From IMG/VR virus record IMGVR_UViG_3300044645_002359, positions 1 through 64,000 of that record: a stretch of 64,000 nucleotides of DNA. One strand, written 5' to 3'. The position numbers and the translations under genes are program-made. The notes under the pieces are model-generated. The model was not told the DNA's origin. It did no database searches and was given only the letters and a program-made list of their open reading frames with translations. How positions within the stretch are numbered: the first letter of the stretch is position 1; each line of letters opens with the position of its first letter. This document shows positions 3,136 to 60,554 of the stretch, piece after piece.

Positions 3136-3183
3136 AGATGATTCAGCGATTGACTCCTTCGAACTGGAAAAACAATCATCTAG
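3136..3183 (+). ncRNA. Helix-CAGC(A/G)A module, type 1
   Basis: agatgatt-cagcga...aaaac-aatcatct. Confidence 0.65.
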
Positions 3184-3582: not shown

Positions 3583-3664
3583 GCGGGTATAGCTCAGCGG
3601 TAGAGCACTTGTCTTCCAAACAAGAGGCGAATAGTTCACGCAGGTTCGAATCCTGTTACCCGCT
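3583..3664 (+). tRNA. tRNA-Gly(TCC) with extended variable loop
   Basis: cttgt-cttccaa-acaag; 15-nt variable region. Confidence 0.85.
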
Positions 3665-3764: not shown

Positions 3765-3784
3765 TCTTTCGCTTCGCGAAAGTT

Positions 3785-3847
3785 CGGCTAACCGTCCCCA
3801 ACGGTTCGGTTCTCCCCCTTGTTTCTGCCCCGCAGAAACGCTATGAT
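3785..3847 (+). promoter_or_regulatory. Class I repeated promoter
   Basis: cggctaaccg; TTGTTT-17-TATGAT; GTG 3854. Confidence 0.8.
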
Positions 3848-3932
3848 ATAAGGGTGGTTGAGAGAGGGCTTCGCCCTCACCTCCTCCCTGGTTTTTGCGA
3901 AAGCAAAAAAGCAACTTGACAATTTAAACATT

Positions 3933-4348: not shown

Positions 4349-4478
4349 TTTTTGCTATCGCAAAAACCCAAAGCCATGGGTAACTGATGGCACAAAGGGT
4401 GTGAGTCCCGAGGGGAAAGCAACTGCAATTGTAATACCCGGCCCTTCAAAGTAACTTGCAGGTTTCTTCATAGGGATT

Positions 4479-4548
4479 TGGACGTTAGCTCAACTGGAAG
4501 AGCGCCGCCCACCGGTGGAGGTTGCGGGTTCGAGTCCCGTGCGTTCAA
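4479..4548 (+). tRNA. tRNA-like gene with 4-nt anticodon loop
   Basis: ccgcc-cacc-ggtgg; D and T arms and acceptor intact. Confidence 0.7.
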
Positions 4549-4609
4549 TTTGCCCTCAGGTGAAAGTCTAGGGGTAATAATTACCGGGAGATCAAACCCT
4601 GGTAAAAAA

Positions 4610-4686
4610 CGGGAATTAGCTCAGTCTTGGTGAAGAGCGCTCGTCTGAAAAACGAGAGGTCCGCAGTTCGATTCTGCGATTTCCGG
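4610..4686 (+). tRNA. tRNA-Phe(GAA)
   Basis: ctcgt-ctgaaaa-acgag. Confidence 0.9.
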
Positions 4687-4707
4687 TTGTTTTGCGATAG
4701 CAAAACT

Positions 4708-4761
4708 AAGATGGTTCAGCAATCTAAAAACTTTCTTTTTGGTAGAAAAACAACCATCTTG
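4708..4761 (+). ncRNA. Helix-CAGCAA module presenting a Gln(TTG)-like anticodon stem-loop
   Basis: aagatggtt-cagcaa...tttct-ttttggt-agaaa...aaccatctt. Confidence 0.75.
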
Positions 4762-4879
4762 TGTAACCTCACAGTTACAAGCTTCGGAATTGACTTAGAA
4801 AGTGGTGCCGTCACCACTCACAGTTTTAACTGCAGAGTTTAGTCAATCTCCTTGATCGTAGCGGGTAAACGGTCTTCAA

Positions 4880-4951
4880 CGGAATGTAGCTCAGAGGGAG
4901 AGCACTCGTCTGGGGGGCGAGAAGTCGTCGGTTCAATCCCGGCCATTCCGA
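4880..4951 (+). tRNA. tRNA-Pro(GGG)
   Basis: ctcgt-ctggggg-gcgag. Confidence 0.85.
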
Positions 4952-5142: not shown

Positions 5143-5210
5143 CGCTCCGTAGTTTAGTGGCAGAACGTCCCCGCGACGGGGTTAATTCGGGTTCGAATCC
5201 CGACAGAGCA
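5143..5210 (+). tRNA. tRNA-like gene with 5-nt anticodon loop
   Basis: cccc-gcgac-gggg; T arm tcggg-ttcgaat-cccga. Confidence 0.6.
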
Positions 5211-5396
5211 ATTTGCCCACAAGTGACAAATCCTATTTCATATGAAAGTAGAAACACCGAAATTGGTGAGAGAGATTCTTCAAGATGCTGAGGCAAGGAA
5301 ACAACTGGCTGCTGCCATAGCTAATCCTTCTCTCACTGTCACACTTAAGGGTAAAACCTATACGCTGGAAAGCATTAAGTTACACACTTAGCACAA

Positions 5397-5704: not shown

Positions 5705-5874
5705 TGTTTGCTCCAGCAAACCAACTATCTTGCATAACCTACCGGTTAGAGCGCGTAACGCTCGGTACCACCCCCCGAACGGGGTTCTCCCAGGCTTGTG
5801 CCCCAGGCCTGGAGCCTCCTGCCCCCTAAGGACAAGGTGCCCTACAAGGGCTTCCAGGCCCCTCTCAGAGGGGG

Positions 5875-5937
5875 CGGTAAGCCGACCCTTCCGGTTCGGT
5901 TCTCCGGCTTGTTTCTGCCTCGCAGAAACGCTATGAT
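5875..5937 (+). promoter_or_regulatory. Class I repeated promoter
   Basis: cggtaagccg; TTGTTT-17-TATGAT; ATG 5944. Confidence 0.85.
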
Positions 5938-5943
5938 ATTAAC

Positions 5944-6261
5944 ATGGAAATCACCGCTTCGTCATCGCCCCTTTCCCCCGCTGAGATGGTCATGGGTTTC
6001 GTACACCGGGCTCGCTCGTCCAGCTTTGCGGGCGGCTTCTCTGAGCGCGACTTTGCTGCTCATGTGCTTCTCTCCGCAGTTGATCAAGTTGATTTGGATC
6101 AATATTCGCGGGAAGCTTTTCTGGCGATCGCCGATGAATTGAGTCGCTATCGCCCGCTTGATATGGTCGAGGAACTGTCAGCCCGTCTTCGCCGTCGGGA
6201 AGCTAGCTTGCAGGCACGTCGTTTACGTCGTCAGCAGCGTATCGCAGACAGAGTAGAATAA
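5944..6261 (+). CDS. Hypothetical protein (leaderless)
   Basis: ATG 6 nt after -10. Confidence 0.7.
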   Translation: MEITASSSPLSPAEMVMGFVHRARSSSFAGGFSERDFAAHVLLSAVDQVDLDQYSREAFLAIADELSRYRPLDMVEELSARLRRREASLQARRLRRQQRIADRVE

Positions 6262-7205: not shown

Positions 7206-7382
7206 ATGAACGAAGACACCAAGCGGCGGATCCTTGAAACTCTCCAAGATGAGCGGGAGGCTCGGTCCAAGGCCCTTGCCTCGCGAGGTTTCACGAGTGA
7301 GCAAGCCCACGCTTACATCGCGGGATACACGGAATCCGTTCTCAACCGCATCCAAGAGCTTCTCTCTGATTCAATCTTGTGA
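7206..7382 (+). CDS. Hypothetical 58-aa protein (leaderless)
   Basis: MNEDTKRRILETLQ...; read manually. Confidence 0.65.
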   Translation: MNEDTKRRILETLQDEREARSKALASRGFTSEQAHAYIAGYTESVLNRIQELLSDSIL

Positions 7383-7523
7383 CGAAACCCGTGAGCCGAA
7401 ACCAAAGCAGATACCTCAGAGAGGTTAGAGACTTTCCTACGAAAATTGCTAAGCAACTCTGGAAGAAGTTTGCCAGAAGAGCAGTTAGACTCCGCAACAA
7501 GAAAACCTTTGAACGTGAAAACC

Positions 7524-7751
7524 ATGACAAATACCAACGCGACTGACGCCCAAACTGTGATCCAACAAGGTTTGAAGATCAACCAACTTCTGCGAGAAAT
7601 TGATTCCCTTAAGAGTCTGGCAGAGGATATGATCCACGCTCTAAATATGGCCTCGTATGACGTTGAGGATCCTTCCAAGAGCCACCTGCTGGAGGTGAAC
7701 GCCGACCAATTTAGCGATAGGTTCCTGTCGATTATTCGGTCAGAGCCCTGA
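7524..7751 (+). CDS. Hypothetical protein
   Basis: ORF track, internal ATG. Confidence 0.6.
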   Translation: MTNTNATDAQTVIQQGLKINQLLREIDSLKSLAEDMIHALNMASYDVEDPSKSHLLEVNADQFSDRFLSIIRSEP

Positions 7752-7788: not shown

Positions 7789-7861
7789 GTTCCAGTGGCC
7801 AAGTGGTCTAAGGCTGGTGCCTGCAAAGCACCGATCGTCGGTTCGACTCCGACCTGGAACT
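7789..7861 (+). tRNA. tRNA-Cys(GCA)
   Basis: Loop ctgcaaa; U73. Confidence 0.9.
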
Positions 7862-7890
7862 TTGCGTTAGAGTGAAAATTCTAAAGCCAC

Positions 7891-7964
7891 GCTGGCTTAG
7901 CTCAGTTGGATAGAGCAGCTGTTTTGTAAACAGCAGGTCGTCGGTTCGAGTCCGACAGTCAGCT
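7891..7964 (+). tRNA. tRNA-Thr(TGT)
   Basis: gctgt-tttgtaa-acagc. Confidence 0.9.
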
Positions 7965-7981
7965 TTTTAAATCAATCGAAA

Positions 7982-8221
7982 ATGTCAAGGGTAACCCTAA
8001 AGCAGCTGATCAAACAAGGTTTCGAACAAGAACCTCGTGACGGCACCGTGACAATTTTTCGAAACCTGCGGGACGGAAACTTGTATCGCATCTACCTGGC
8101 TTCCCCACGGATGTATACTGGAAGCCGGTTAATTGCTGAGCGCATGTTTTATCCCAACGGAGTCACAAAGCGGATTCCTGAGTCCCATCAGAAAGATTAC
8201 GTTGTTGTTTCCTATCGATAA
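7982..8221 (+). CDS. Hypothetical protein
   Basis: Tiled + strand ORF. Confidence 0.6.
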   Translation: MSRVTLKQLIKQGFEQEPRDGTVTIFRNLRDGNLYRIYLASPRMYTGSRLIAERMFYPNGVTKRIPESHQKDYVVVSYR

Positions 8222-8240
8222 TCATGATTGATATCAACGA

Positions 8241-8474
8241 ATGAAACCCACGAATTCTCCACCTGAACTTTTCCTGCCGCTTGAACGAGCTGTCGTAGCT
8301 GCAGCCTATCAGAACCTTTTGATTGATCGAATCAACGTTCCCCTTGAACAGGGTGAAGAGGAAACCCCTTGGCAAAATTACCTTGAAGAGGCTCGCTACC
8401 TTCTTAAGGAGACTGGGGAAAACTACAAGGGTCAACACGGTCATCCCACTATCAAAGTTTTCACTGAAAATTAA
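8241..8474 (+). CDS. Hypothetical protein
   Basis: Tiled ORF. Confidence 0.6.
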   Translation: MKPTNSPPELFLPLERAVVAAAYQNLLIDRINVPLEQGEEETPWQNYLEEARYLLKETGENYKGQHGHPTIKVFTEN

Positions 8475-8485
8475 GACCCTGAATT

Positions 8486-8776
8486 ATGGAAATTTGGCAA
8501 ACCTACCGAAACGCCGACGACATTGAAGGGCGAGGCCCCATGGTCCCTGACCGGGCATTCCTCCATGAGCACCATGCTGCTGAGTACATTGATGCCCAAC
8601 CGGGCATTATGGGCCGGAGGGGGGAATGGTCCAAGCAAAAGTATGGGGATTGGGAGATGAAGAGGGTGTTTGTGTATGAACACAGCGTCATTGAGCAAGA
8701 ACGCCAATTGGCTGCGCTCAAAGAAACTGCGTTAGCTAAGCTCACTGTGGCGGAAAAAGAGGCTCTGGGACTATGA
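8486..8776 (+). CDS. Hypothetical protein, C-terminal ALAKLT..E.EALGL motif
   Basis: Tiled ORF. Confidence 0.7.
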   Translation: MEIWQTYRNADDIEGRGPMVPDRAFLHEHHAAEYIDAQPGIMGRRGEWSKQKYGDWEMKRVFVYEHSVIEQERQLAALKETALAKLTVAEKEALGL

Positions 8777-8799
8777 CGATCAAGTCAATCTAAAGACAG

Positions 8800-9252
8800 A
8801 TGGGAAAGTATTCTTGCAATGTTGACGGAAAGGTTCTGGACTGGAAGTTCACCAAATCTAAGGCTAGCTCTGGCACCGAAATAACTTGGAACTTCTTTCT
8901 AGGTGAAACGTTTATTGGGCAGATGGTTAAGGCCCGACGCAGCGGGTGGGACCCGTACGTTCACCATACTCGGTGCCCTTTCGGCGGCCTGCAAGGTTTT
9001 GCAACCAGGTACGATGCGGCAGAGTACATGCTGAAAGTTTGCGGTTTCATCAAACACCCGGACCAGCAGTATATCGCAGAGATGATAGACTTGGAGCACA
9101 TGCCTTTCGAGTTTGGGACCTTCAAGGAGTTTATTGACTGCAAACAGAAACTAAAGGTTGCTGAAGAGAAGTTGGCTGCTGCGTATGAAAGGGAAGTTGC
9201 ACTAGAGAGTCAGCTCTCTTGGGCCGAAAACCCTGAACGTATGGGCAACTAA
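8800..9252 (+). CDS. Hypothetical protein
   Basis: Tiled ORF, 150 aa. Confidence 0.7.
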   Translation: MGKYSCNVDGKVLDWKFTKSKASSGTEITWNFFLGETFIGQMVKARRSGWDPYVHHTRCPFGGLQGFATRYDAAEYMLKVCGFIKHPDQQYIAEMIDLEHMPFEFGTFKEFIDCKQKLKVAEEKLAAAYEREVALESQLSWAENPERMGN

Positions 9253-9285
9253 CTCACACCAAATAACACTAACCCTACCAAAAAA

Positions 9286-9576
9286 ATGAACCCTGAAGAA
9301 TTTTGCATTTGGTTAAGAGGCTTCCTAGATGGGGCTGATACTTTATATGGCCTTAGCCTTGATAAATTGAATACACTTGTAGAAAAACTGAACTCGGTCT
9401 CACCCCAGTCAGTTAAAACGGAATTCACCCTCCCTAAGATTACAGAAGACGAAGCTTATCGTATGAAAAAAGCAATTGACGATTACCAATGGCCACCTAA
9501 AAAGAGTGACCCCTGGGCACCTCCGTACAGATTTACCTGTGACAGTCAGGAGCCTGATATTAGATTAAACTGCTGA
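9286..9576 (+). CDS. Hypothetical protein, FCxWLxG family 1
   Basis: MNPEEFCIWLRGF. Confidence 0.7.
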   Translation: MNPEEFCIWLRGFLDGADTLYGLSLDKLNTLVEKLNSVSPQSVKTEFTLPKITEDEAYRMKKAIDDYQWPPKKSDPWAPPYRFTCDSQEPDIRLNC

Positions 9577-9599
9577 TTCCCCCTAAAATTATAACAAAA

Positions 9600-9788
9600 A
9601 TGAGTCAAAACGACTTCCTGTGTTGGCTTCAGGGCTACATCCTAGGTGTAACCGGCACTCAATTATCAGACGAACAAGTTGATCGTATCCATGGTAATCT
9701 GGTAAAAGTCACTTACCCGCCACAACCGGGGCAAACACCTTTTCCTGTTAACGGCCAGAGCCCAACCGGGGAACTTTACCGCTGTTAA
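9600..9788 (+). CDS. Hypothetical protein, FCxWLxG family 2
   Basis: MSQNDFLCWLQGY. Confidence 0.7.
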   Translation: MSQNDFLCWLQGYILGVTGTQLSDEQVDRIHGNLVKVTYPPQPGQTPFPVNGQSPTGELYRC

Positions 9789-9807
9789 TTCCACTTTCAT
9801 AAACACA

Positions 9808-10080
9808 ATGCAATCACGAGACTTTTGCTACTGGCTCCAAGGACTCTTTGAGCTTGGGAACCCTCAGACGCTTACCTCTGAGCAAATCCAAATCATCCGC
9901 AATCACCTCAACATGGTTTTCTACCATGAGATTGACCCTAGTTTCGGGGGACCCGAGGTTCAGGATGCCCTAAACACGCTACACTCGGGGTCTGTCTCAC
10001 TGTCAAACCAAACACAGTCTAGCGAGTTGTTTCACCCCGCCCAAAGACCCCCACGAAATGGTCCCCTCATGAAATGCTGA
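9808..10080 (+). CDS. Hypothetical protein, FCxWLxG family 3
   Basis: MQSRDFCYWLQGL. Confidence 0.7.
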   Translation: MQSRDFCYWLQGLFELGNPQTLTSEQIQIIRNHLNMVFYHEIDPSFGGPEVQDALNTLHSGSVSLSNQTQSSELFHPAQRPPRNGPLMKC

Positions 10081-10314
10081 ATTGCGAGTAACGTGAACTG
10101 ATAAGAAAAATGGACAGCAAGACTCGAGAAGAAATCTCAGCATTGATTGATGGCAAAATTCGTGAGCATGAATTCAAGGTTGGTTGGGTCAGCGGACTCA
10201 TTGGCGTGGCCTTCGTGGTTGGTATAGTCCATGCTATTTGGCTGCTGAAACAGCTTGCCTCGTTTACGGCTGCGAGCTGAAGGTAAAATAACCCTGTAAA
10301 TAAACAGGGAACAA

Positions 10315-10386
10315 GGTTGGATAGTTCAGAGGTAGAACGGCTCTTTCATACGGAGTAAGTCGCAGGTTCGAATCCTGCTCCAGCCA
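10315..10386 (+). tRNA. tRNA-Met/Ile2(CAT)
   Basis: gctct-ttcatac-ggagt. Confidence 0.8.
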
Positions 10387-10393
10387 TTTTACC

Positions 10394-10411
10394 GGGGTAA
10401 GTTTAACTGAG
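10394..10411 (+). promoter_or_regulatory. Putative late promoter GGGTAAGTTTAAYTGAG
   Basis: Also at 11321 and 27022; variants at 45711, 52097 and 22919. Confidence 0.6.
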
Positions 10412-10423
10412 TCCACGAAACAT

Positions 10424-11262
10424 ATGCAGAGTTCTTTTTCAGCTAAAGCTATTGAGACAGTTAACCTTCTCCTGGGTAGTTCAGGCACACTTGACTACAC
10501 ACGTTGTGTAAGACCGGATGGTACCGCCTATGGGACTTCAGGTTCCTGTCGCAAGGGTACGCAGCAAAATAAAGCTGAAATTCGGAAGCTAAAAGCCAAG
10601 ATAAAAGAAGCTGAGGGGGTTATAGAGTACCAGCTGAAAGCAGGCGACCCGGCATACGCAAGTCTCTGGGCCAAGCGATTAGAGGAACACAAAAGAAAAC
10701 TAACCGAACTTGAGGGCAATGAGCCGGTCAAGCCAACTACAAAATCAAACGCTCCAGTCTTAACTGGCGTTGAAAAAAGCGCCTTGGTTAACTATATGAC
10801 CGGGGGCTCCATGGAAACTGGGAATTTGCTGGATATAAACTGGAGGCTCAGGGGATTAGGTGAAGGGCTGATCTCATCTACCGAAAACGAACAAATCAAG
10901 AATCTGGACTCAGCCTTGAAGAAACTACCCGGTAATTCGTCTGGGCAGGAGTTTTATCGGGGTGTATCTTTGGAGCCTGAGCAAGCCAGGAATCTCTTAA
11001 CTTCACTGAAAAGTCAAGGGTCGTGGAAAGACCCAGGTTTTCTTCCTACTCGCGAGACAGAGAACAGGCAGAAGAGTTTGCAGGTCAAGGGGAAGTTTCC
11101 GTCATTTTCATTACGCGGTCCAAAAACTTACGAGATGCCGGTAAATACGCTCCCGAAGAATTTTCGGATCAGCAAGAATCAATCCTCCCCCGGAATACCC
11201 CTTTAAGGGTTACAAACATTAAAAAAGACGGCGAGCTAATTGTGGTCCATCTGGCTGATTGA
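10424..11262 (+). CDS. DFTRC-family protein with C-terminal VIP2/Alt-like ADP-ribosyltransferase; single-base frameshift at 11038-11041
   Basis: YRGV...GFSSYS...DQQESILP once 10424..11206 and 11023..11262 are joined. Confidence 0.75.
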
Positions 11263-11350
11263 GCTTCCCATATCCACAATTAAACTTCCTTGGCTCAGCG
11301 GTTTCAACCTTTGGTGCAAGGGGGTAAGTTTAATTGAGCTCCCTTAACAG

Positions 11351-12127
11351 ATGCAAAGCTCCTTTTCAGTCGATGCCCTAAACAAAGTCGACCGGCTCTT
11401 GGCTGGTGCGGATGCTTTAGACTTCACTCGTTGCGTAAGGCCCAATGGCACAGCCTAGGGGACAGCAGGTCAATGCCGTAAAGGAGTAGAACGTCCAGAA
11501 GAAGAGACGGAGAGGCAAGATCGTGAGAAAAAACAAGTTCTGTATCTGATTGACAAGCGTTACTCCGATGACCCGGAAAGAAAGGCCAAGGTTCTTAACA
11601 GCTTCGAGGCCAACGGAAACTTAGCCGACAAGATTCGAGAGTTGGATGACGGGAACACCGTAATACTTTCAAACCACATGAACATTCATCTGGAGAGAAA
11701 ACTCAATGACATTGACAGTGTATCCCTGACATTAGTAGGCAGAGCAGACCAAAAAGTAAAAGAGATCAGCTTCACTGCCAACGGGGAATTGGATTACGGA
11801 AGCATAGAAGATCCAAAGGATCGCGTCAAAGCTGCTTTAACTGTACGAAAGTTATTTACGATGCTAACAAAGGCTTTGAACCCAGGGGATATGCTCTCTT
11901 GCTACGCCTGGGATGAAGACGGAAGAGAGCAACAAAGAGAAAAAGCCTACAAGAAAATTGGCTTTCAGCCCCAGGCTGACGGTAGTTTGTTAGGAGAAGT
12001 TCAATCGGGTGGCGGTGTTGCCTTCCGAGCTGAACCTGCATTCTCAGAAAGCAAAGGAAGCTGGGTAGACTGGTATGTGGCCCTATTCGGTGAGCTGCCC
12101 CGGAGAAGCTCCTCCAAGGCTCTCTGA
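11351..12127 (+). CDS. DFTRC-family protein with in-frame TAG at 11456
   Basis: MQSSFS...DFTRCVRPNGTA*GTAGQCRKG; open to 12127. Confidence 0.7.
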
Positions 12128-24419: not shown

Positions 24420-24660
24420 GGTCTAAGGGCAAAGCCCTACCATACGGCTCAAAACTGGGTGTAGCTCGGGCAGACGTTGCGGTGGACAAGGGGGCAGTAC
24501 CCTTTAGCTCCACTTTCCCTTTACGGGGCTAATCTAGTTTCGACACCGTGAAAGTGTCACTTGAGTGAAAGCCGCTTGCATAAGCACAAAATAGACGCTA
24601 ACAAAATCGTCAAATTCGAGAGGACTGCCGTAGCCGTTTGAGCTATAGCATTCTGACTCA
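24420..24660 (+). ncRNA. ssrA: Circularly permuted (two-piece) tmRNA, tag (A)NKIVKFERTAVAV
   Basis: T arm and acceptor tagctcca end at 24512, upstream of 5' ggggctaatctagtttcgac at 24525; tag frame 24597-24641. Confidence 0.85.
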
Positions 24661-24664
24661 TTGC

Positions 24665-24683
24665 GGGGGCTTCGGCCCCCCTT
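24665..24683 (+). terminator. GC hairpin with TTCG loop after tmRNA
   Basis: gggggc-ttcg-gccccc-tt. Confidence 0.7.
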
Positions 24684-24701
24684 AAACCAATTAGAAACAA
24701 A

Positions 24702-25094
24702 ATGTTGCAAATTACCTACGAGTCAGAACTAGACTCTGACTACAGGAAAGAACTTGATTCTTGCACAAGCGTTCAAGATTTGAAAGCCTTGATTGACAAG
24801 TACAAGGCAGTCTCCCCCGACTTAAAGGATGTTGTAATTGAGAGCGATGCCGATTACAATGAGTTCAAGAAAGGCTTAGCCGTGGAACGAACTGGGCAAT
24901 ATGCTGGTGACGAATGGTGTGAAAGATTTGGCTCTTTGGCCCTTCCTGTCTACATGCTTTACGCTTCACTTTTAGCCGGAGAGTATGGGGCACCTTGGGG
25001 AGTTGCTTACTTTAGAATGTGCGCGGAAGGGGCTGTCCCAGGTGTAGACCCTGAGCTTGCGAAACAAGAAATTTTCTCATTTCTGCCCAGTTAA
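24702..25094 (+). CDS. Hypothetical protein
   Basis: ORF track. Confidence 0.7.
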   Translation: MLQITYESELDSDYRKELDSCTSVQDLKALIDKYKAVSPDLKDVVIESDADYNEFKKGLAVERTGQYAGDEWCERFGSLALPVYMLYASLLAGEYGAPWGVAYFRMCAEGAVPGVDPELAKQEIFSFLPS

Positions 25095-42131: not shown

Positions 42132-43008
42132 GAAAATCTCCAAAATAGAAAAGATAGAAAGTGACTCCCACCTATATGATATACAAACTTTTACCCGTAA
42201 CTTCTACGCTGAGGGGGTATTGGTACACAATAGCTTAATCAAGCTCTTCAACTACAACGGGGACTGGATTGTTTCGACGTCCGGATCGGTGGCAGCAGCT
42301 TCGGAAGTTGGTTCCACTGGGCGTTCTTTTGAGGAACTGTTCTGGCTTGTCTTTGACGAAGTTGGTTATTCTCGGGAATGGCTCGATGAGGGTCTGTGCT
42401 ATATCTTCGAACTGTGCCACCGCGATAACCGCATCGTTGTGGATTATGCAGAGCCTCAGTTACCGCTGCTGGCTGTGCGCGACCGTTCCAACGATTTCGA
42501 AGAGCTTGAACTTGTTTCGTTCTGCAACCTGTTCGGGTTCAAAGCTGCCAAGTCGTATGACCTGGGGAGCATGGAAGGCTTGATGGCAGTCGTGAACGAT
42601 CGTGGCGCCGACCACGAAGGGTTTATCCTGTTTGACGGTGTTGGTCGTGCGAAAGCAAAGTCCGATGTGTACTGCCAAATGCACCGTGTTCGCGGAAACG
42701 GCGATCCGGACTTCTCCGAGCTTTTTCTGAACGACGATTTGGAAGAATTCCTACTGCACTTCCCTGAGTACCGTGAGGGCTTCGACGTTCACCTGCGTTC
42801 CATCGACATAATGGAAGTTGCTGTGGAAGAGATCATGGGGGTTTACAACCACTTGAATCAGAAGGACTTTGCTCAAGTTGTAATTGCTAAGGAGAGGGAA
42901 CTGTCGGGGGCTTGTTTTGCGATTCGCTCCGGTAAAGTTGGCTCCTTCGGTCAGTGGCTGGAAGGCTTGTCTCCGAAGAAGCTGGATGCCCTGCTGGGTA
43001 TCAACTGA
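42130..43008 (+). CDS. C-half of split intein (34 aa) plus RNA ligase 1 C-extein
   Basis: MKISKIEK...LYDIQ...NFYAEGVLVHN|SLIKLF..GDW.VSTSG...YIFEL...HEGFILFD...AKAKS. Confidence 0.9.
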   Translation: MKISKIEKIESDSHLYDIQTFTRNFYAEGVLVHNSLIKLFNYNGDWIVSTSGSVAAASEVGSTGRSFEELFWLVFDEVGYSREWLDEGLCYIFELCHRDNRIVVDYAEPQLPLLAVRDRSNDFEELELVSFCNLFGFKAAKSYDLGSMEGLMAVVNDRGADHEGFILFDGVGRAKAKSDVYCQMHRVRGNGDPDFSELFLNDDLEEFLLHFPEYREGFDVHLRSIDIMEVAVEEIMGVYNHLNQKDFAQVVIAKERELSGACFAIRSGKVGSFGQWLEGLSPKKLDALLGIN

Positions 43009-48815: not shown

Positions 48816-49940
48816 ATGGCAAACATCGAACGCAAACTTGCATCTGTCCGCAAAGTAACGGACATTCGCCCCATCCCCGACGCTGACGCCATCGAATGCG
48901 CCATTGTAGGTGGTGGTTGGCCCGTGGTAGTGAAAAAGGGAGAATTTCAGGTTGGCGACCTCGCCATCTACTTCGAGATTGATTCCTGGATTCCTCACGA
49001 ACTTGCCCCATTCCTCTCCAAGGGGAAGAAACCAAGGGAGTATAATGGAGTGAAGGGGGAGAGGCTGAAAACTGTCAGGCTCCGTGGTCAAGTCTCCCAG
49101 GGTCTCCTGCTCCGCTTCTCGGACATCTCTCCAAGCTTCTACGTTGTCTCGCTAGCCGAACCTTACGGGGGGAGGGAATTTCTCCGAGTTGATCAGTGCG
49201 TGTGGGAGGAAGGTGAGGACTTCACTCTAGAGTTCGGAATTCAGAAATGGGAAGCTCCTGTCCCAGCTTGCTTGGCTGGTCAAGTTCGCGGGAACTTTCC
49301 TAGCTTCCTCGTGAAGACGGACCAGGAACGTTGTCAGAATGTTGTGGAGGAAATCTTTGAGCGCCATAAGGGTGAAACCTACGAAGTTACTATCAAACTT
49401 GATGGGTCTTCCTGCACGGTCTACGTCAAGGACGGGGAAGTTGGGGTGTGCAGCCGTAACCTTGACCTCAAGGAAACCGAAGGCAATAGTTTCTGGAAGG
49501 CTGCTAGGGATCAGGGCATTATCGATGCTATGCTTGCATACAATGGGAAGACTGGTCACAGTATTGCCTTGCAGTCGGAAACCCTTGGAGAAGGCATCCA
49601 GGGCAACCAGGAAGGAATCAAGGGACAACGCCTATTCCTGTTTGACATCTTCGATATCGACAGCCAAACTTACATGAAGCCAGGGGCCAGAATGAACCTC
49701 TTGGACAAGTACCTAGTTCCATTAGGCGCTGATTTAACCCATACCCCTGTCCTACACCCCGCAATGTGTGTAACTGATAGTTCCGCCAACCTTGATGAGC
49801 TACTAGCGTACGCCGATGGCCCGTCCATGAACCCCAAAGTCAAACGCGAAGGCTTAGTATTCAAGTCCAATGACTCTGAGTTTTCCTTCAAGGCCATTAG
49901 TAATGAATGGCTCTTATCCAAGGGAAAGAAGGGTGGCTGA
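48816..49940 (+). CDS. RNA ligase, Rnl2/DRB0094 family
   Basis: RKLASVRKV...YFEIDS...SQGL...KTDQER...KLDGSS...EGLVFK...FKAISNEWL. Confidence 0.92.
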   Translation: MANIERKLASVRKVTDIRPIPDADAIECAIVGGGWPVVVKKGEFQVGDLAIYFEIDSWIPHELAPFLSKGKKPREYNGVKGERLKTVRLRGQVSQGLLLRFSDISPSFYVVSLAEPYGGREFLRVDQCVWEEGEDFTLEFGIQKWEAPVPACLAGQVRGNFPSFLVKTDQERCQNVVEEIFERHKGETYEVTIKLDGSSCTVYVKDGEVGVCSRNLDLKETEGNSFWKAARDQGIIDAMLAYNGKTGHSIALQSETLGEGIQGNQEGIKGQRLFLFDIFDIDSQTYMKPGARMNLLDKYLVPLGADLTHTPVLHPAMCVTDSSANLDELLAYADGPSMNPKVKREGLVFKSNDSEFSFKAISNEWLLSKGKKGG

Positions 49941-56477: not shown

Positions 56478-56567
56478 TTGCCGAGAGTTTACCGTCTACC
56501 CCTGGCCCTATGTTAGGGCTGTCGGTGTCCACGCCGCCATTTCCCTAGGGTAACCCCGGGAACAAAG

Positions 56568-56593
56568 TTGATACAGCCATCACTTGTATCCAA
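56568..56593 (+). promoter_or_regulatory. CAGCCA hairpin in the leader of the TROVE-like gene
   Basis: ttgataca-gccatcact-tgtatc(c)aa. Confidence 0.55.
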
Positions 56594-56624
56594 AACACAA
56601 AAACAATCAACTTGAGAGAAGAAA

Positions 56625-58118
56625 ATGACAACCTTTTTGAACGCACTCGAAAACGAATTCAATACTACGACCACAGCCAACGGCGCAAAAGCCTATAAGT
56701 CCACAGGTTCCAAGAACCTGGACCTTTTCGGGAAGATTGCAGCCTGCCGCAACGACGTTAGCGAAGCAACTCGCCTATTCAACCTTGCTTATGCTGAAGA
56801 CCCTGAGACCGCAACCAGAATCCTGTTCTGGGCACGTGACATTCGCGGTGGCCAGGGTGAGCGTAAGATCTTCCGAGAAGTTTTCAAGGAGCTGGTTCGC
56901 AATGATGCTACAATCGGCGCGAAACTCATTAGTTTGATCCCGCAGTATGGACGCTGGGATGATGTGGTAGCCCTTGAAGGCACCCTAGTTTGGAATGTTG
57001 CACTCGAGGCAATCAAGGCACAGCTGAACGCTGACTTGAACACCGAAGTTGGAAACTCCGTGTCATTGCTTGCGAAATGGCTCCCTTCCATTAACGCCTC
57101 TAGCAAGGAGTCTAAGAGGATTGGCCGCAAGATTGCCGAGGCAATGGGTTGGAATGAGCGTCAATATCGCAAGGCTTTGACTGCTCTTAGGACACAAATC
57201 AAAATTGTCGAACAGGCAATGTGTGCCCGTGAGTGGGATGCCATTGATTATAGCAAGTTGCCTTCTCGTGCAGGCTTCATGTATCGGAAAGCTTTCGCAA
57301 ATCGTGATGGCGACCGTTACCAGTCCTACCTGGATGCAGTTAAAAAAGGTGAAGCAAAGATCAATGCCGGTACTTTGTATCCGTATGACATCGTTGAGAA
57401 GTGTCTCTACAACCAAGAATCCAATGATACTCTAGAAGTAATGTGGAAAGCCCTGCCGAACTTCATGGAGGGCAAGGAATTGAATGGGCTTGTTGTTGCC
57501 GATGTTAGCCGTTCTATGTCAGGCCGTCCAATGGCAGTATCCATCTCTCTGGCGATGTATATCGCAGAGCGTAATACCGGCATCTGGAAGGACAAGTTCC
57601 TAACATTCTCAGGGAATCCTTCTCTACAGACTGTGACTGGCAGTAGCCTTTCAAACAAGGTTCGCAACCTTAGCCGAGCAGATTGGGGCGGTAACACTGA
57701 TATTCAGAAGACGTTTGACCTTATTCTGGATACTGCAGTTCGGAACAACATTCCAGAGTCAGACATGCCCCGCAAACTGATTATTGTCTCAGACATGCAG
57801 TTTGATAACTGTGTTATCATGGGAGGTAATTACTCCGGTCGTATGAGTTATGGCGGAGCCCGAGTCACCAACTACGAAGCAATCCGCATCAAGTACGCTC
57901 AAGCTGGCTACAGCTTGCCCGAAGTTATCTTCTGGAATGTCGATTCCTCAGATAACGTCCCGATGAAGGCACATGATTCCGGTACCGCTCTCGTTAGCGG
58001 TTGCTCTCCGTCAATCCTGACCGCAGTTCTTACCAGAAACGCAATCACCCCATTGTCCCTAATGAGAGATGCTGTTTATACTGAAAGGTATGACGCTGTG
58101 GGTGCGGTCTTTAACTGA
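56625..58118 (+). CDS. TROVE/Ro60-related DUF2828 + vWA protein
   Basis: T.NGA.AY.STG...LDLF...RDIRGG.GER...YGRWDD...AKWLPS...ADVSRSM...SDMQFD...FWNV...SG.SP. Confidence 0.85.
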   Translation: MTTFLNALENEFNTTTTANGAKAYKSTGSKNLDLFGKIAACRNDVSEATRLFNLAYAEDPETATRILFWARDIRGGQGERKIFREVFKELVRNDATIGAKLISLIPQYGRWDDVVALEGTLVWNVALEAIKAQLNADLNTEVGNSVSLLAKWLPSINASSKESKRIGRKIAEAMGWNERQYRKALTALRTQIKIVEQAMCAREWDAIDYSKLPSRAGFMYRKAFANRDGDRYQSYLDAVKKGEAKINAGTLYPYDIVEKCLYNQESNDTLEVMWKALPNFMEGKELNGLVVADVSRSMSGRPMAVSISLAMYIAERNTGIWKDKFLTFSGNPSLQTVTGSSLSNKVRNLSRADWGGNTDIQKTFDLILDTAVRNNIPESDMPRKLIIVSDMQFDNCVIMGGNYSGRMSYGGARVTNYEAIRIKYAQAGYSLPEVIFWNVDSSDNVPMKAHDSGTALVSGCSPSILTAVLTRNAITPLSLMRDAVYTERYDAVGAVFN

Positions 58119-58305
58119 TGGAAAGGACCCTAGTAACTACGTTAATGTCAGCCCAGGGTCTTCTCCTTGGGTTGAAGTTAACAGGGCAAATAGCCTGGTC
58201 GTGGCTGTGGGTGTTTAGTCCTATTTTAGTTGTAAGCTGTGGGTTAGGGTTACTTATCCTCCTATTGATCCTAGGGTTGATGGGCGGTAAGTAAGGCAGA
58301 CCCGT

Positions 58306-58359
58306 AAGATGGTTCAGCAATCAAACCTTTCTTTGTAACAGAAAAAACCAACCATCTTG
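58306..58359 (+). ncRNA. Helix-CAGCAA module presenting a Tyr(GTA)-like anticodon stem-loop
   Basis: aagatggtt-cagcaa...tttct-ttgtaac-agaaa...aaccatctt. Confidence 0.75.
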
Positions 58360-58403
58360 TTTAAATAAAGTCAACTTCCCTGGTAGTTCACCGGGGCAAC
58401 AAT

Positions 58404-58520
58404 GGGGAATGGTGCAATGGCAGCACACGTAATTAACGGTTACCTTGGATAAGGTACAGACAGCAATTACAAAAATTCCATTCCACGGACGTGACGGAGG
58501 TTCGATTCCTTCTTCCCCAT
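58404..58520 (+). ncRNA. tRNA body (Gly TCC-like) with CAGCAA hairpin inserted in the anticodon stem
   Basis: D and T arms; gtacctt-ggat-aaggtac-aga-cagcaa; cc-attccac-gg. Confidence 0.7.
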
Positions 58521-58719
58521 TTTCGAAAATCAACTCAAGCAATCAACAATGAAGTCATCTCATCTTTACACTTTGATCGGTGTTGTAGCACTGTGGTTTG
58601 TATTGACCTTGACACTAATTCTCAAGGAAAACTATCAAGGTGCTATCGGAACCGGATTGGCCCTTTTCTTTTCCTCGGTTGGTACGATAGGTGTTGTTGC
58701 CCATTTTGAAGGGAACAGG

Positions 58720-58782
58720 CGGTAAACCGCCCCATGTGGTTCGGTTTGCACCCTTGTTTTCGCACCGCGAAAACGCTATGAT
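58720..58782 (+). promoter_or_regulatory. Class I repeated promoter
   Basis: cggtaaaccg; TTGTTT-17-TATGAT; ATG 58789. Confidence 0.85.
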
Positions 58783-58788
58783 TATAAC

Positions 58789-59232
58789 ATGAACCAAGAG
58801 ACCTACTTCCCTTGCTCTCGCCAGATCGAGATCCTCGATCAGCACGAGAACGCCAACGAGATTCCTCCGTACGTTAATTATCTGGTGCGGTTTGAGAACC
58901 CCTACGGTGGAGAAAGTGTCGGAGTGGTAATTGAGCCCAACTCCGAAGGCGTCGAAGAAGTTTACACTAACCAGAAATTTCCGGTAGCTTCCATGCTTCC
59001 TGGCCAATCGGAAAATGACGAGCTTCTGCTCAACCTTTTCCGCACCTGGGTGTTGACTCCGCCGATGTTTACACAAGTCACTGTTCGTCAACAGACGGAC
59101 AAGTTCTACACCTTGAGTTTTCACAATCAGCACTGGAATTTCCATGCCCGCTCTCGGAACCTCTCGTACATCAAAGGGAAGATTCGGAACCTAGCAAAGT
59201 CCCGTGATGTGAAGGTCACCTGGGAGGTTTGA
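58789..59232 (+). CDS. Hypothetical protein (leaderless)
   Basis: ATG 6 nt after -10. Confidence 0.7.
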   Translation: MNQETYFPCSRQIEILDQHENANEIPPYVNYLVRFENPYGGESVGVVIEPNSEGVEEVYTNQKFPVASMLPGQSENDELLLNLFRTWVLTPPMFTQVTVRQQTDKFYTLSFHNQHWNFHARSRNLSYIKGKIRNLAKSRDVKVTWEV

Positions 59233-59272
59233 CTCCAAGTTTACCTCCCTCCTTGAGGCCTATGCTGTTTTT

Positions 59273-59363
59273 GAGACGAGTCAGCGTTAACTAAAGGATA
59301 ATGCGAGACAGTTAAAAACTTTTTCAGCTAGGTGGTTCAAATCCACTGTCAACACTCATCTTG
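59273..59363 (+). ncRNA. Y-RNA-like module: terminal helix, CAGCG and internal T arm
   Basis: gagacgagt-cagcg...gtgg-ttcaaat-ccac...actcatctt; starts at predicted +1 of the TATGCT promoter. Confidence 0.65.
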
Positions 59364-59377
59364 TTCACAAATAAAAC

Positions 59378-59501
59378 CGAAGAGTAGACAAGTGGTTAGG
59401 CAGCGGTAATGCAAAAAAGATTATCTAGTTTAGGTGATTCAGCAATACCCTAATACGCTAAAAGGAACCGCCATACGCAAGTTCGAATCTTGCCTCTTCG
59501 A
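59378..59501 (+). ncRNA. tRNA body with CAGCAA hairpin inside the anticodon loop
   Basis: cgaagag/ctcttcg; gcggt..accgc encloses gattatcta-gtt-taggtgatt-cagcaa. Confidence 0.7.
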
Positions 59502-59521
59502 TTGTTTTTCTTTGAAAACGT

Positions 59522-59570
59522 AGATAGTTCAGCAATTCACCCTAACTCAATAAGGAAAACAACTATCTTG
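59522..59570 (+). ncRNA. Helix-CAGCAA module, type 1
   Basis: agatagtt-cagcaa...cct-aactcaata-agg...aactatct. Confidence 0.7.
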
Positions 59571-59609
59571 CTGAATCTAGTTTCAACAAACTATTTGCGA
59601 AGCAAATAA

Positions 59610-59727
59610 GGGACCGTAGCTCAACTGGTAGAGCGCTAAATAAAAGTTATCTTGTACAAGATACGTCAGCAATTAAAAAATACCTCGTTTAAAGGAGTGG
59701 TTGCAGGTTCGAGTCCTGCCGGTCCCA
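59610..59727 (+). ncRNA. tRNA body (Lys TTT-like) with CAGCAA hairpin between the D and anticodon arms
   Basis: gggaccg/cggtccc; tatcttg-tac-aagata-cgt-cagcaa; cct-cgtttaa-agg. Confidence 0.7.
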
Positions 59728-59970
59728 TTTACCCCAAGTCTAGCCATGAAAATTTCACGGTTGTTACCCTGCTGGCCTGCACAGTGCTAACTCTCTCGCC
59801 AACGTGGGCAAAATACCAGAGTCTAATCACTGGCGCAAACCCGGAGGAAGTTCAAGAAAATGCCTTCAAGAAAAGTATGAGCTATCCGGTGGGCTCTCTC
59901 AAGTGTAGCCAGCGTTGTTCTCAGTGGTGGCATCACGACTGACTTAGCATCAAGAGTAAAAAAGTTTAAC

Positions 59971-60339
59971 ATGACAAATAGTACAACCCCGTTTCACTTG
60001 ACCCAAAGTCACCTGAAACTGCTGAGGAGAATGCACGTAGGTTGGAGCGTCTGTGAGTTTGGTGCTCCCGAGATAGACCCAAAGAGACCATACGGCAACA
60101 GTTGGGTGCTTGGCGACATACACGAGATTTTGACAGGGGAAGACATAGACGAACTAACTGAATCTCAGAAGGAGGAATACAGGCAGTTACACGAAGAAAC
60201 TCAAACAGCCCTCCAGATTATCCTTTCCATGGGCAAGTTTGAGGAAGGCTTGTACATACGGACTAACCCGTACTCTTCCACCTGGGTACCGTACCCACTC
60301 GCGGGCAGAATCGCGGAAAAATCACAAAACGCTACTTAG
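59971..60339 (+). CDS. Conserved phage hypothetical protein
   Basis: GAPEIDPKRPYGNS....DIHEIL. Confidence 0.75.
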   Translation: MTNSTTPFHLTQSHLKLLRRMHVGWSVCEFGAPEIDPKRPYGNSWVLGDIHEILTGEDIDELTESQKEEYRQLHEETQTALQIILSMGKFEEGLYIRTNPYSSTWVPYPLAGRIAEKSQNAT

Positions 60340-60491
60340 TGGGCCAAATCGTAAGACCTCTTTCAGATTTACACCAGACTCTACCAACGAAGCGGGGACA
60401 AGGGCTGCCTTGAACTGCCAGAAACACCGACTTTTTCGGTTTTTGGGGCGAGAACCGGGGGTCAACCGGCTGAGACAGTTTCCAAGAGGTT

Positions 60492-60554
60492 CGGTTACCC
60501 GAACCGGGTGGTTCGGTTCCCCTCCTTGTTTTTGCAGCGCAAAAACGCTATAGT
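60492..60554 (+). promoter_or_regulatory. Class I repeated promoter
   Basis: cggttacccg; TTGTTT-17-TATAGT; ATG 60561. Confidence 0.85.

Follow-up and report, generated by a model that had tools for sequence, protein, structure and literature searches.

tRNA-shaped phage genes carrying a helix-CAGCAA module: candidate Y-RNA-like partners of a neighbouring Ro60-like protein

Introduction

Why should tRNA genes of a phage carry a conserved hairpin inside the anticodon arm? The question is raised by three plus-strand genes at 58403-58520 (gene 1), 59378-59501 (gene 2, 124 nt) and 59610-59727 (gene 3) of a 64,000-nt stretch of DNA, positions 1 to 64,000 of the IMG/VR virus record IMGVR_UViG_3300044645_002359, which was analysed as a whole and is referred to here as the window. 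Each gene contains an insert built around a short helix and the motif CAGCAA (the module). A preliminary description of the locus had left three functions open for these genes: tRNAs shielded by a protein, decoys, or precursors spliced with the phage's own RNA ligases. We favour, at a probability of roughly 0.6, the reading that the three genes are tRNA-format, Y-RNA-like partners of the adjacent Ro60-like (DUF2828) protein. Earlier work has described Y RNAs, the tRNA-like YrlA, and Ro60 proteins of phages that are paired with a tRNA-like RNA (PMC4201824, PMC7824862). A resemblance of DUF2828 proteins to Ro60 has also been suggested before, as has the idea that 'some tRNA genes may be Y RNAs'. 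In our literature search we came across no account of the CAGCAA module, its occurrence in the phage groups considered here, or its presence in the anticodon stem of tRNA genes.

Results

Three tRNA bodies with a module in the anticodon arm

The three tRNA bodies lie where the preliminary description had placed them. The Rfam tRNA model matched gene 1 (41.5 bits) and gene 3 (50.1 bits) over all four arms, with 58 nt replacing the inner part of the anticodon arm and loop, and ARAGORN, which called none of the three genes in the window in its default mode, called all three in intron mode; its anticodon assignments in that mode (Trp, Gly and Gly for genes 1-3) are artefacts of a model that places introns at 37/38, and were not used. 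Gene 2 gave no Rfam tRNA match in the window because a single D-stem pair is broken (GAC/GGC instead of GCC/GGC). It is nevertheless tRNA-like (acceptor stem of 7 bp, anticodon stem of 5 bp and a T arm, though without an anticodon loop), and its ortholog in a close relative (L003:5853-5974) scored 41.9 bits, with a full 5-bp anticodon stem that closes a 57-nt insert. All three genes retain acceptor, D and T arms around inserts of 45-59 nt, and none of them has the contiguous 5-bp anticodon stem, 7-nt loop, U33 and purine 37 of a canonical tRNA. Over positions 57500-60500, Rfam at E <= 10 returned tRNA matches only, and no intron, ribozyme or YrlA.

The inserts share one plan, consisting of an A-rich linker, a hairpin, a spacer of 1-4 nt, CAGCAAU and an A/U-rich linker, and their cores read UACCUU-GGAU-AAGGUA-CAGA-CAGCAAU in gene 1, AUUAUCUA-GUU-UAGGUGAU-U-CAGCAAU in gene 2 and UAUCUU-GUAC-AAGAUA-CGU-CAGCAAU in gene 3. 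In gene 1, A26 and CGU (nucleotides 27-29) are followed by an insert of 47 nt (58431-58477) that comprises the linker AAUUAACGGU, the hairpin (58441-58456), the spacer CAGA, CAGCAAU (58461-58467) and the linker UACAAAAAUU; the rest of the anticodon arm, CC-AUUCCAC-GGACG, occupies 58478-58491. Gene 3 has G26 and CU (nucleotides 27-28) before an insert of 45 nt (59638-59682; AAAUAAAAGU, hairpin 59648-59663, spacer CGU, CAGCAAU 59667-59673, UAAAAAAUA), after which CCU-CGUUUAA-AGGAG (59683-59697) completes the arm. The insert of these two genes sits in the 5' strand of the anticodon stem, outside the anticodon loop. The anticodon-like hairpins that had been noticed downstream of it are real, and become perfect 5-bp stems once the two or three nucleotides that precede the insert are joined to them (CGUCC/GGACG with the loop AUUCCAC in gene 1; CUCCU/AGGAG with the loop CGUUUAA, and G33 instead of U33, in gene 3). 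In gene 2 the anticodon stem is complete (GCGGU at 59403-59407 and ACCGC at 59467-59471) and closes a 59-nt insert (hairpin 59420-59438, CAGCAAU 59440-59446), the module taking the place of the loop; every junction position of this gene was tried for an anticodon, and none was canonical.

The position of the insert is the same in other phages. We carried out a deletion scan, in which every possible segment was removed and ARAGORN was asked for an ordinary tRNA; in about 28 unique viral tRNA genes, dropping 38-54 nt after nucleotide 28 or 29 left a 5-bp stem, U33 and purine 37, with many different anticodons. For gene 1 the scan gave Gly(UCC), with the junction at 28/29 or 29/30.

Both parts of the module exceed chance. 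The window has 63 copies of CAGCAA, where shuffled sequences have 37 +/- 6.6, and the insert hairpin was found in all 29 related inserts examined, with several pair types per position, while a hairpin of at least 6 bp arose in only 20% of shuffles. The consensus is a helix of 6-9 bp with a conserved C-G pair, a spacer of 2-4 nt and single-stranded C[A/U]GCAA[U/C] between A/U-rich linkers, and the insert is the most conserved part of these tRNA genes. The window also contains five free-standing modules, whose helix is made by their 5' and 3' ends. As the preliminary description had claimed, the order seen in genes 1-3 (3' strand, short loop, 5' strand, motif) is a circular permutation of these. 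Free modules begin with (U)UAAG or UUAG and finish with CUUG or CUAG; in the capped form of the inserts, CUUG or CUAG is linked to UAAG or UUAG through 1-2 nt, matching those ends.

The arms are maintained and the anticodon drifts

The tRNA arms are under selection: across 28 genes, 15 of 16 arm pairs showed double (compensatory) changes. Pairs 27:43 and 28:42, which form across the insert, were present in 60 of 60 cells of a test set preselected for 5-bp stems (permuted mean 28, maximum 44), and occurred as A-U, C-G, G-C, U-A and U-G. Between gene 3 and its ortholog (L003:6774-6885), pair 28:42 changes from U-A in the window to G-C, the ortholog having the canonical loop CUUUUAA, and the helix of gene 2 covaries among its orthologs. 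An alignment with MAFFT and RNAalifold recovered the tRNA arms and missed both the anticodon stem and the insert hairpin, the columns being displaced by the differing insert lengths; anchored scripts were used instead. Loss of the arms and random insertion had been named beforehand as what decaying pseudo-tRNAs would show; the arms instead covary, and insertion takes place at 28/29 or 29/30.

The anticodon behaves differently. The window loops do read as Gly(TCC) and Lys(TTT), as first labelled, but these labels are unstable among orthologs. Eight gene-1 orthologs of near-identical body and insert carry CAU in six cases, UAC in one (L002) and UCC in the window, with A32, U33, A37 and C38 invariant, and the loops of gene-3 orthologs are CUUUUAA, CGUUUAA (window) and ACGUUAA. 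Some insert-tRNAs have Ser anticodons on class-I bodies that lack the long variable arm. An unstable anticodon within a fixed loop frame and stem fits an RNA that imitates an anticodon arm, and not a reader of a fixed codon.

The module adjoins a Ro60-like gene in phages of several bacterial phyla

The RNA genes lie next to a gene for a protein of 497 aa (plus strand, 56625-58118), which stops 185 nt before the first module, the modules and insert-tRNAs coming next on the same strand. The protein contains the Pfam families DUF2828 and DUF7788 and a vWA domain with the MIDAS motif DxSxS (conserved D293, S295 and S297), and belongs to phrog_850, described as 'RNA-binding protein'; an NCBIfam search with it returned nothing. 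When its AlphaFold model (pLDDT 73) was compared with the PDB, the best 8 matches were all Ro60/TROVE structures aligned over the full length, and they included the Ro60 of Thermus phage phiLo (E 6.6e-7, the best), Deinococcus Rsr, and Xenopus and human Ro60. This model of moderate quality suggests that the DUF2828 protein is Ro60-like in fold, which bears out the link to a TROVE-type protein proposed at the outset. Homologs have been judged Ro60/Rsr-like by others, namely CKA15_055 of a P100-like Listeria phage (PMC12282133) and gp130 of the Felixounavirus Bas63 (PMC11482910); the former protein is present in purified virions (PMC12282133), and the latter acts against the Ppl defence system (PMC11482910). 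GenBank records of mycobacteriophages label the homolog 'Ro-like RNA binding protein'.

All close relatives (L002-L014) have both the RNA genes and the Ro60-like gene, and the orthologs of the three genes are kept in each of them. In Synechococcus phage B3, the stretch 3' of the homolog holds two modules, an insert-tRNA (annotated tRNA-Pseudo), a further module and tRNAs. A DNA pattern search that was blind to the protein identified about 28 unique insert-tRNAs in viral contigs, and a DUF2828 gene lay within the locus in 10 of 15 clean insert-tRNA loci compared with 12 of 103 other loci (Fisher p = 1e-5); among the remaining five clean contigs, PF11443 was present elsewhere on the contig in four.

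The association extends well beyond these relatives. Searching a GenBank phage collection by tblastn found DUF2828 homologs in 702 records, including phages of Mycobacterium, Listeria, Vibrio and Campylobacter and members of Felixounavirus, and a helix-spacer-CAGCAAW module stood beside the DUF2828 gene in all five loci scanned. Mycobacterium phage Douge and the E. coli Felixounavirus skuden (L143) have three copies each, Campylobacter phage F357 two and Bacillus phage KoopaTroopa five, and Listeria phage LP-125 (L146) has three just 5' of the gene, at 4664-4927. The phages in which the module family adjoins a Ro60-like gene infect hosts of at least four bacterial phyla; the RNAs of the window lie close to theirs on the same strand, and the linkage recurs across loci. 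In the P100-like Listeria phage CKA15, three very abundant, unannotated early transcripts arise just upstream of the Ro60-like gene, adjoin tRNA genes and, in at least two cases, carry strong promoters of their own (PMC12282133). We infer that these transcripts are the modules seen in LP-125.

Permuted tRNA mimics link the genes to YrlA

One module of each of the phages Douge, skuden and KoopaTroopa surrounds a T arm, a loop-closed acceptor stem and a D arm, a fold that RNAfold recovers. The enclosed RNA is a circularly permuted, YrlA-like tRNA mimic; the Rfam YrlA model (RF02553) matched the one of Douge weakly (32.4 bits versus a threshold of 69). Followed around the circle, strand A of the module leads through CAGCAA, a linker and a small hairpin to the 3' half of the anticodon stem, after which come the variable region, the T arm, the acceptor, the D arm, the 5' half of the anticodon stem, an A-rich linker and strand B of the module. 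This order is identical in the Douge RNA and in genes 1 and 3 of the window, and the position of the chain break alone differs; gene 2 is the counterpart of the skuden type, in which the module caps a full anticodon stem. Judged by this arrangement of parts, the window genes are best read as normally oriented counterparts of YrlA. The skuden mimic (7362-7486) overlaps an annotated minus-strand hypothetical CDS (7355-7585), which is probably a mis-call.

The likeness to YrlA (RF02553, PMC4201824) covers several features. Both are non-coding RNAs that adjoin, on the same strand, a gene of the Ro60 type (HEAT-ring plus vWA), and both are modular. One part is a helix that binds the protein, or in the window genes would do so, and next to whose inner end a few conserved nucleotides stay single-stranded; the other is a tRNA-like domain with T and D arms (in the window genes, the Rfam tRNA matches and covarying arms). 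As with YrlA and YrlB, there are several RNAs per locus, some with and some without a tRNA-like part (one with it and others without in the YrlA/YrlB case), and they are found in phages and bacteria. There are also differences. YrlA ends at its protein-binding stem and has a loop-closed acceptor, whereas the window genes have an open acceptor and a helix capped by a loop of 3-4 nt; a terminal stem of the YrlA kind is absent from the three genes and present in the free modules, with a motif of the CAGCAA type. A full anticodon stem-loop persists in genes 1 and 3 of the window. C[A/U]GCAA[U/C] takes the place of the GNCGAA(N)G of YrlA (PMC4201824), the putative partner is a DUF2828 protein, in contrast to the TROVE Pfam family in the case of YrlA, and the window RNAs do not reach the gathering score of RF02553.

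The free modules in turn resemble Y RNAs, including phiLo Yrl1 and Yrl2 (PMC12135203), in having a terminal stem formed by the 5' and 3' ends, an adjacent conserved motif, a variable inner loop or hairpin and a position near the protein gene. They differ in being shorter (~45-80 nt), in their motif (CGAA in phiLo Yrl1 and Yrl2) and in the protein family.

The phage has a second permuted RNA related to tRNA, a circularly permuted (two-piece type) tmRNA gene at 24423-24732 with the tag ANKIVKFERTAVAV. Permuted tRNA genes are present in Cyanidioschyzon. In these cases, as here, genomes differ in the circular permutation in which they encode one and the same RNA architecture; here, however, the permutation links an arm-bearing tRNA to a Y-like RNA, not two forms of a single translational RNA.

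Is the insert an intron?

The inserts, at 45-59 nt, are too short for group I or II introns, as had been pointed out (a group I intron in a tRNA has more than 200 nt and a P1-P9 core), and with no Rfam intron or ribozyme match at E <= 10 these classes were rejected. The absence of a bulge-helix-bulge motif was also confirmed, by inspection of the junctions of 29 inserts: the inserts form a three-way junction whose linkers vary in length and sequence. In archaea, non-canonical tRNA introns occur outside 37/38, including in the anticodon stem, and are cut at bulge-helix-bulge motifs. The window inserts resemble such protein-spliced introns in placing tens of nucleotides at a non-canonical site of the anticodon arm, removal of which gives a normal tRNA. 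They differ in lacking the bulge-helix-bulge, in the lack of a splicing endonuclease gene in the genome, and in having a conserved motif that is tied to the neighbouring protein gene and also occurs free-standing and in permuted mimics. Neither the splicing endonuclease family PF01974 nor RtcB was found in the 201-kb genome (estimated 71% complete), while the window encodes an Rnl1-like ligase (42367-42636) and an RNA_ligase family protein (49377-49895).

Inserts were present in Logan contigs of four metatranscriptome runs, in unspliced form only and without any joint that removes the insert, in contigs that drop rare forms; other joints in these contigs trace to the different intergenic content of relatives and not to insert removal. 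This evidence is weak because it consists of contigs, possibly derived from DNA.

Four small ORFs lie between or after the RNA genes. Pfam and PHROG gave no informative family for any of them; the ORFs at 58118-58294 and 58789-59232 matched L012 only among the compared loci, the other two matched close relatives only, and none was found outside close relatives. They therefore offer no candidate nuclease partner.

Free-standing modules and other features of the window

All five free modules are on the plus strand. One lies just 5' of the protein gene (56565-56613; AAGUUGAU-A-CAGCCAU ... AAUCAACUU), its CAGCCAU variant being shared with phage B3, and another follows that gene (58304-58360; UAAGAUGGUU-CAGCAAU, the inner hairpin UUUCU-UUGUAAC-AGAAA, then AACCAUCUUG; ortholog L002:6696-6749). 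The module at 4707-4761, within the tRNA cluster, is a near-identical paralog of the latter with the inner hairpin UUUCU-UUUUGGU-AGAAA, and a CAGCGAU variant is found at 3136-3181 within the same cluster. The fifth module (59520-59570; UAGAUAGUU-CAGCAAU ... AACUAUCUUG) has orthologs in L002-L014. Around it (59520-59579), an alternative pairing of UUCAGCAA (59528-59535) with UUGCUGAA (59568-59575) would mask the motif, and a module-like TAGATTCAGCAAGATAGTT is present on the minus strand. Directly 3' of a tRNA-Met, at 5707-5735, CCAGCAA-ACC-AACTATCTTGC shares the 3' strand of the module at 59561-59571; a matching 5' strand was not found nearby, and this may be a half module. Searching for free modules with relaxed criteria gave 555 matches against 278 in shuffles, which was considered too noisy, and only longer helices beside DUF2828 genes and tRNA clusters were used.

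Hairpins resembling a T arm (5-bp stem, loop TTCRANN) occur outside called tRNA genes at 241-257, 1016-1032, 1480-1496, 1513-1529, 1550-1566, 2384-2400, 2411-2427 and 59331-59347; several are in tandem, and the last lies just 5' of gene 2. In other phages, some free modules enclose a lone T arm (L016:563-644, L024:3207-3282). At 882-1041 a tRNA-like element of 160 nt, called by ARAGORN in intron mode only, combines a T arm with an acceptor-type stem of 8 bp (TTGAAGTG/CACTTCAA), ~125 nt lying between. The main tRNA cluster contains further unusual tRNAs (363-433, 2165-2237, 3583-3664, 4478-4549 and 5143-5211), among them Ser (ACU, CGA) on short class-I bodies, 'anticodons' of 4 nt and 2 nt, and an 82-nt tRNA-Gly(UCC).

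An intergenic cassette of ~70 nt is present in at least four copies (2612-2690, 3781-3850, 5876-5945 and 58722-58790); a GC hairpin similar to GGCGGUAAACCGCC is followed by CGGTTCGGTT and next by CCCTTGTTTCTGC-N-CGCAGAAACGCTATGAT, an arrangement that resembles a terminator combined with a promoter. In one RNA run, a depth peak at 58718-58769 coincides with the last of these copies.

Discussion

What, then, are these RNAs for? In the reading that we favour, the module would be a protein-binding element grafted onto a tRNA, where it replaces the anticodon loop in gene 2 and otherwise forms a third arm at 28/29 or 29/30. The predicted fold is a normal L-shaped tRNA with a three-way junction in its anticodon stem, and the ring-shaped Ro60-like protein would sit on the extra arm beside the anticodon loop. 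The two chain ends would meet at the acceptor, and the module helix would be capped, the reverse of YrlA-like RNAs. We infer that the RNAs work unspliced. During infection the complex may serve as a tRNA mimic, luring or inhibiting anticodon nucleases or other host factors directed at tRNAs; alternatively, it could tether the protein to enzymes that handle tRNAs, for instance repair ligases. Among the three functions first put forward, protein-bound tRNAs or decoys fit best, since the module is a conserved element of the protein's putative partner RNAs across phyla and occurs in permuted mimics that cannot be spliced into a tRNA; the spliced precursor fits less well.

In cells, rsr-yrl genes belong to operons for RNA repair, and a few kb 3' of the DUF2828 gene of LP-125 there are likewise genes for an RtcB-like protein and an RNA ligase (7855-11521). 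Both facts support this proposed way of working, as do the anti-defence activity of the Bas63 homolog, the early transcripts of the Listeria phage and the proposal that YrlA, through its tRNA-like domain, is a competitive inhibitor of an anticodon nuclease (PMC7790460).

Several points weigh against this interpretation. Binding of the module by the DUF2828 protein is a prediction from their association. The likeness of the protein to Ro60 is one of fold only, sequence and profile searches of PDB sequences having returned no match with it, and the model that shows it is of moderate quality (pLDDT 73). The set used for pairs 27:43 and 28:42 was preselected, and the metatranscriptome evidence comes from contigs, which lose rare forms and may include DNA. 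Most inserts leave a fully canonical anticodon arm, as would be expected of a spliceable pre-tRNA; a few insert-tRNA genes encode CCA; no other tRNA-Lys(UUU) was seen in the genome (estimated 71% complete); and in the window lineage the anticodon and the discriminator base of gene 1 changed together (CAU/A73 to UCC/U73), which hints at charging by a synthetase.

These last observations are what one would expect if the inserts were a new kind of protein-dependent tRNA intron, in which the Ro60-like protein holds the pre-tRNA, an unnamed endonuclease cuts the linkers and an Rnl1- or Rnl2-like ligase joins nucleotide 28 to 29. The removal of 38-54 nt at a fixed place yields a perfect stem, U33 and a purine at 37 in about 28 genes, and ligase genes are at hand both in the window and, together with an RtcB-like gene, within a few kb of the LP-125 DUF2828 gene. 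An intact stem across the insert is equally expected, however, if the whole RNA, with the three-way junction itself as its fold, is the functional form, and other evidence speaks against excision: the variable linkers at both junctions without a bulge-helix-bulge, the failure to find a splicing-endonuclease family or RtcB in the genome or an intron or ribozyme family in Rfam, and RNA-run contigs that contain no joint removing the insert. Moreover, the same module and junction occur in permuted RNAs that are unable to yield a tRNA, excision would leave gene 2 without an anticodon loop, and gene 3 would have G33. The insert is most likely not an intron, and we regard this explanation as doubtful. 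A fuller version of it appears rather improbable to us, namely splicing run by the phage, in which the Ro60-like ring would recognise a ~45-nt anticodon-stem intron that is excised, the halves being sealed by a phage RNA ligase, so that the tRNAs would mature only in infected cells and until then be invisible to host anticodon nucleases.

It is very unlikely that the module is a cis-acting signal of tRNA-cluster transcripts (for processing, stabilisation or transcription) and its proximity to DUF2828 incidental. Free modules do lie between tRNA genes (3136-3181 and 4707-4761 in the window, and also in skuden and KoopaTroopa), and DUF2828 genes commonly flank tRNA clusters. The modules nevertheless hug the protein gene where tRNAs are scarce (none annotated in the Douge locus, one in Campylobacter phage F357), a processing site within the anticodon stem would ruin the tRNA, and the motif is kept across four host phyla with differing RNases and polymerases. 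The abundant CKA15 early transcripts with their own promoters (PMC12282133) argue in the same direction, to the extent that their presumed identity with the LP-125 modules holds.

That the genes are decaying pseudo-tRNAs hit by a small mobile or repeated element with a preference for tRNA genes, as the multicopy module, the GenBank label tRNA-Pseudo of the B3 copy, the D-stem mismatch of gene 2 and the missing U33 of gene 3 might suggest, is scarcely credible and already largely refuted by covariation, given that compensatory changes maintain every arm in 28 genes and the anticodon stem across the insert (28:42 U-A in the window and G-C in L003 included), that orthologs persist in all close relatives with the insert as their most conserved part, and that no target-site duplication or transposase was seen.

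If genes 1-3 are indeed tRNA-format partners of the Ro60-like protein, the finding touches a wider family. Conservation of Ro60 and Y RNAs extends from bacteria to humans, and the role of the tRNA-like YrlA is unsettled in the field. The module would provide partner RNAs, with a simple searchable signature, for a large Ro60-like family (702 records) for which there had previously been guesses only, and it accounts for a class of 'pseudo-tRNA' annotations in phages. The rapid change of the triplet within a fixed loop frame and stem is the behaviour expected of a bait in an arms race with tRNA-cutting defences. The unpermuted form, a real tRNA with an anticodon loop that carries a protein-binding arm, would offer a plausible origin for mimics of the YrlA type.

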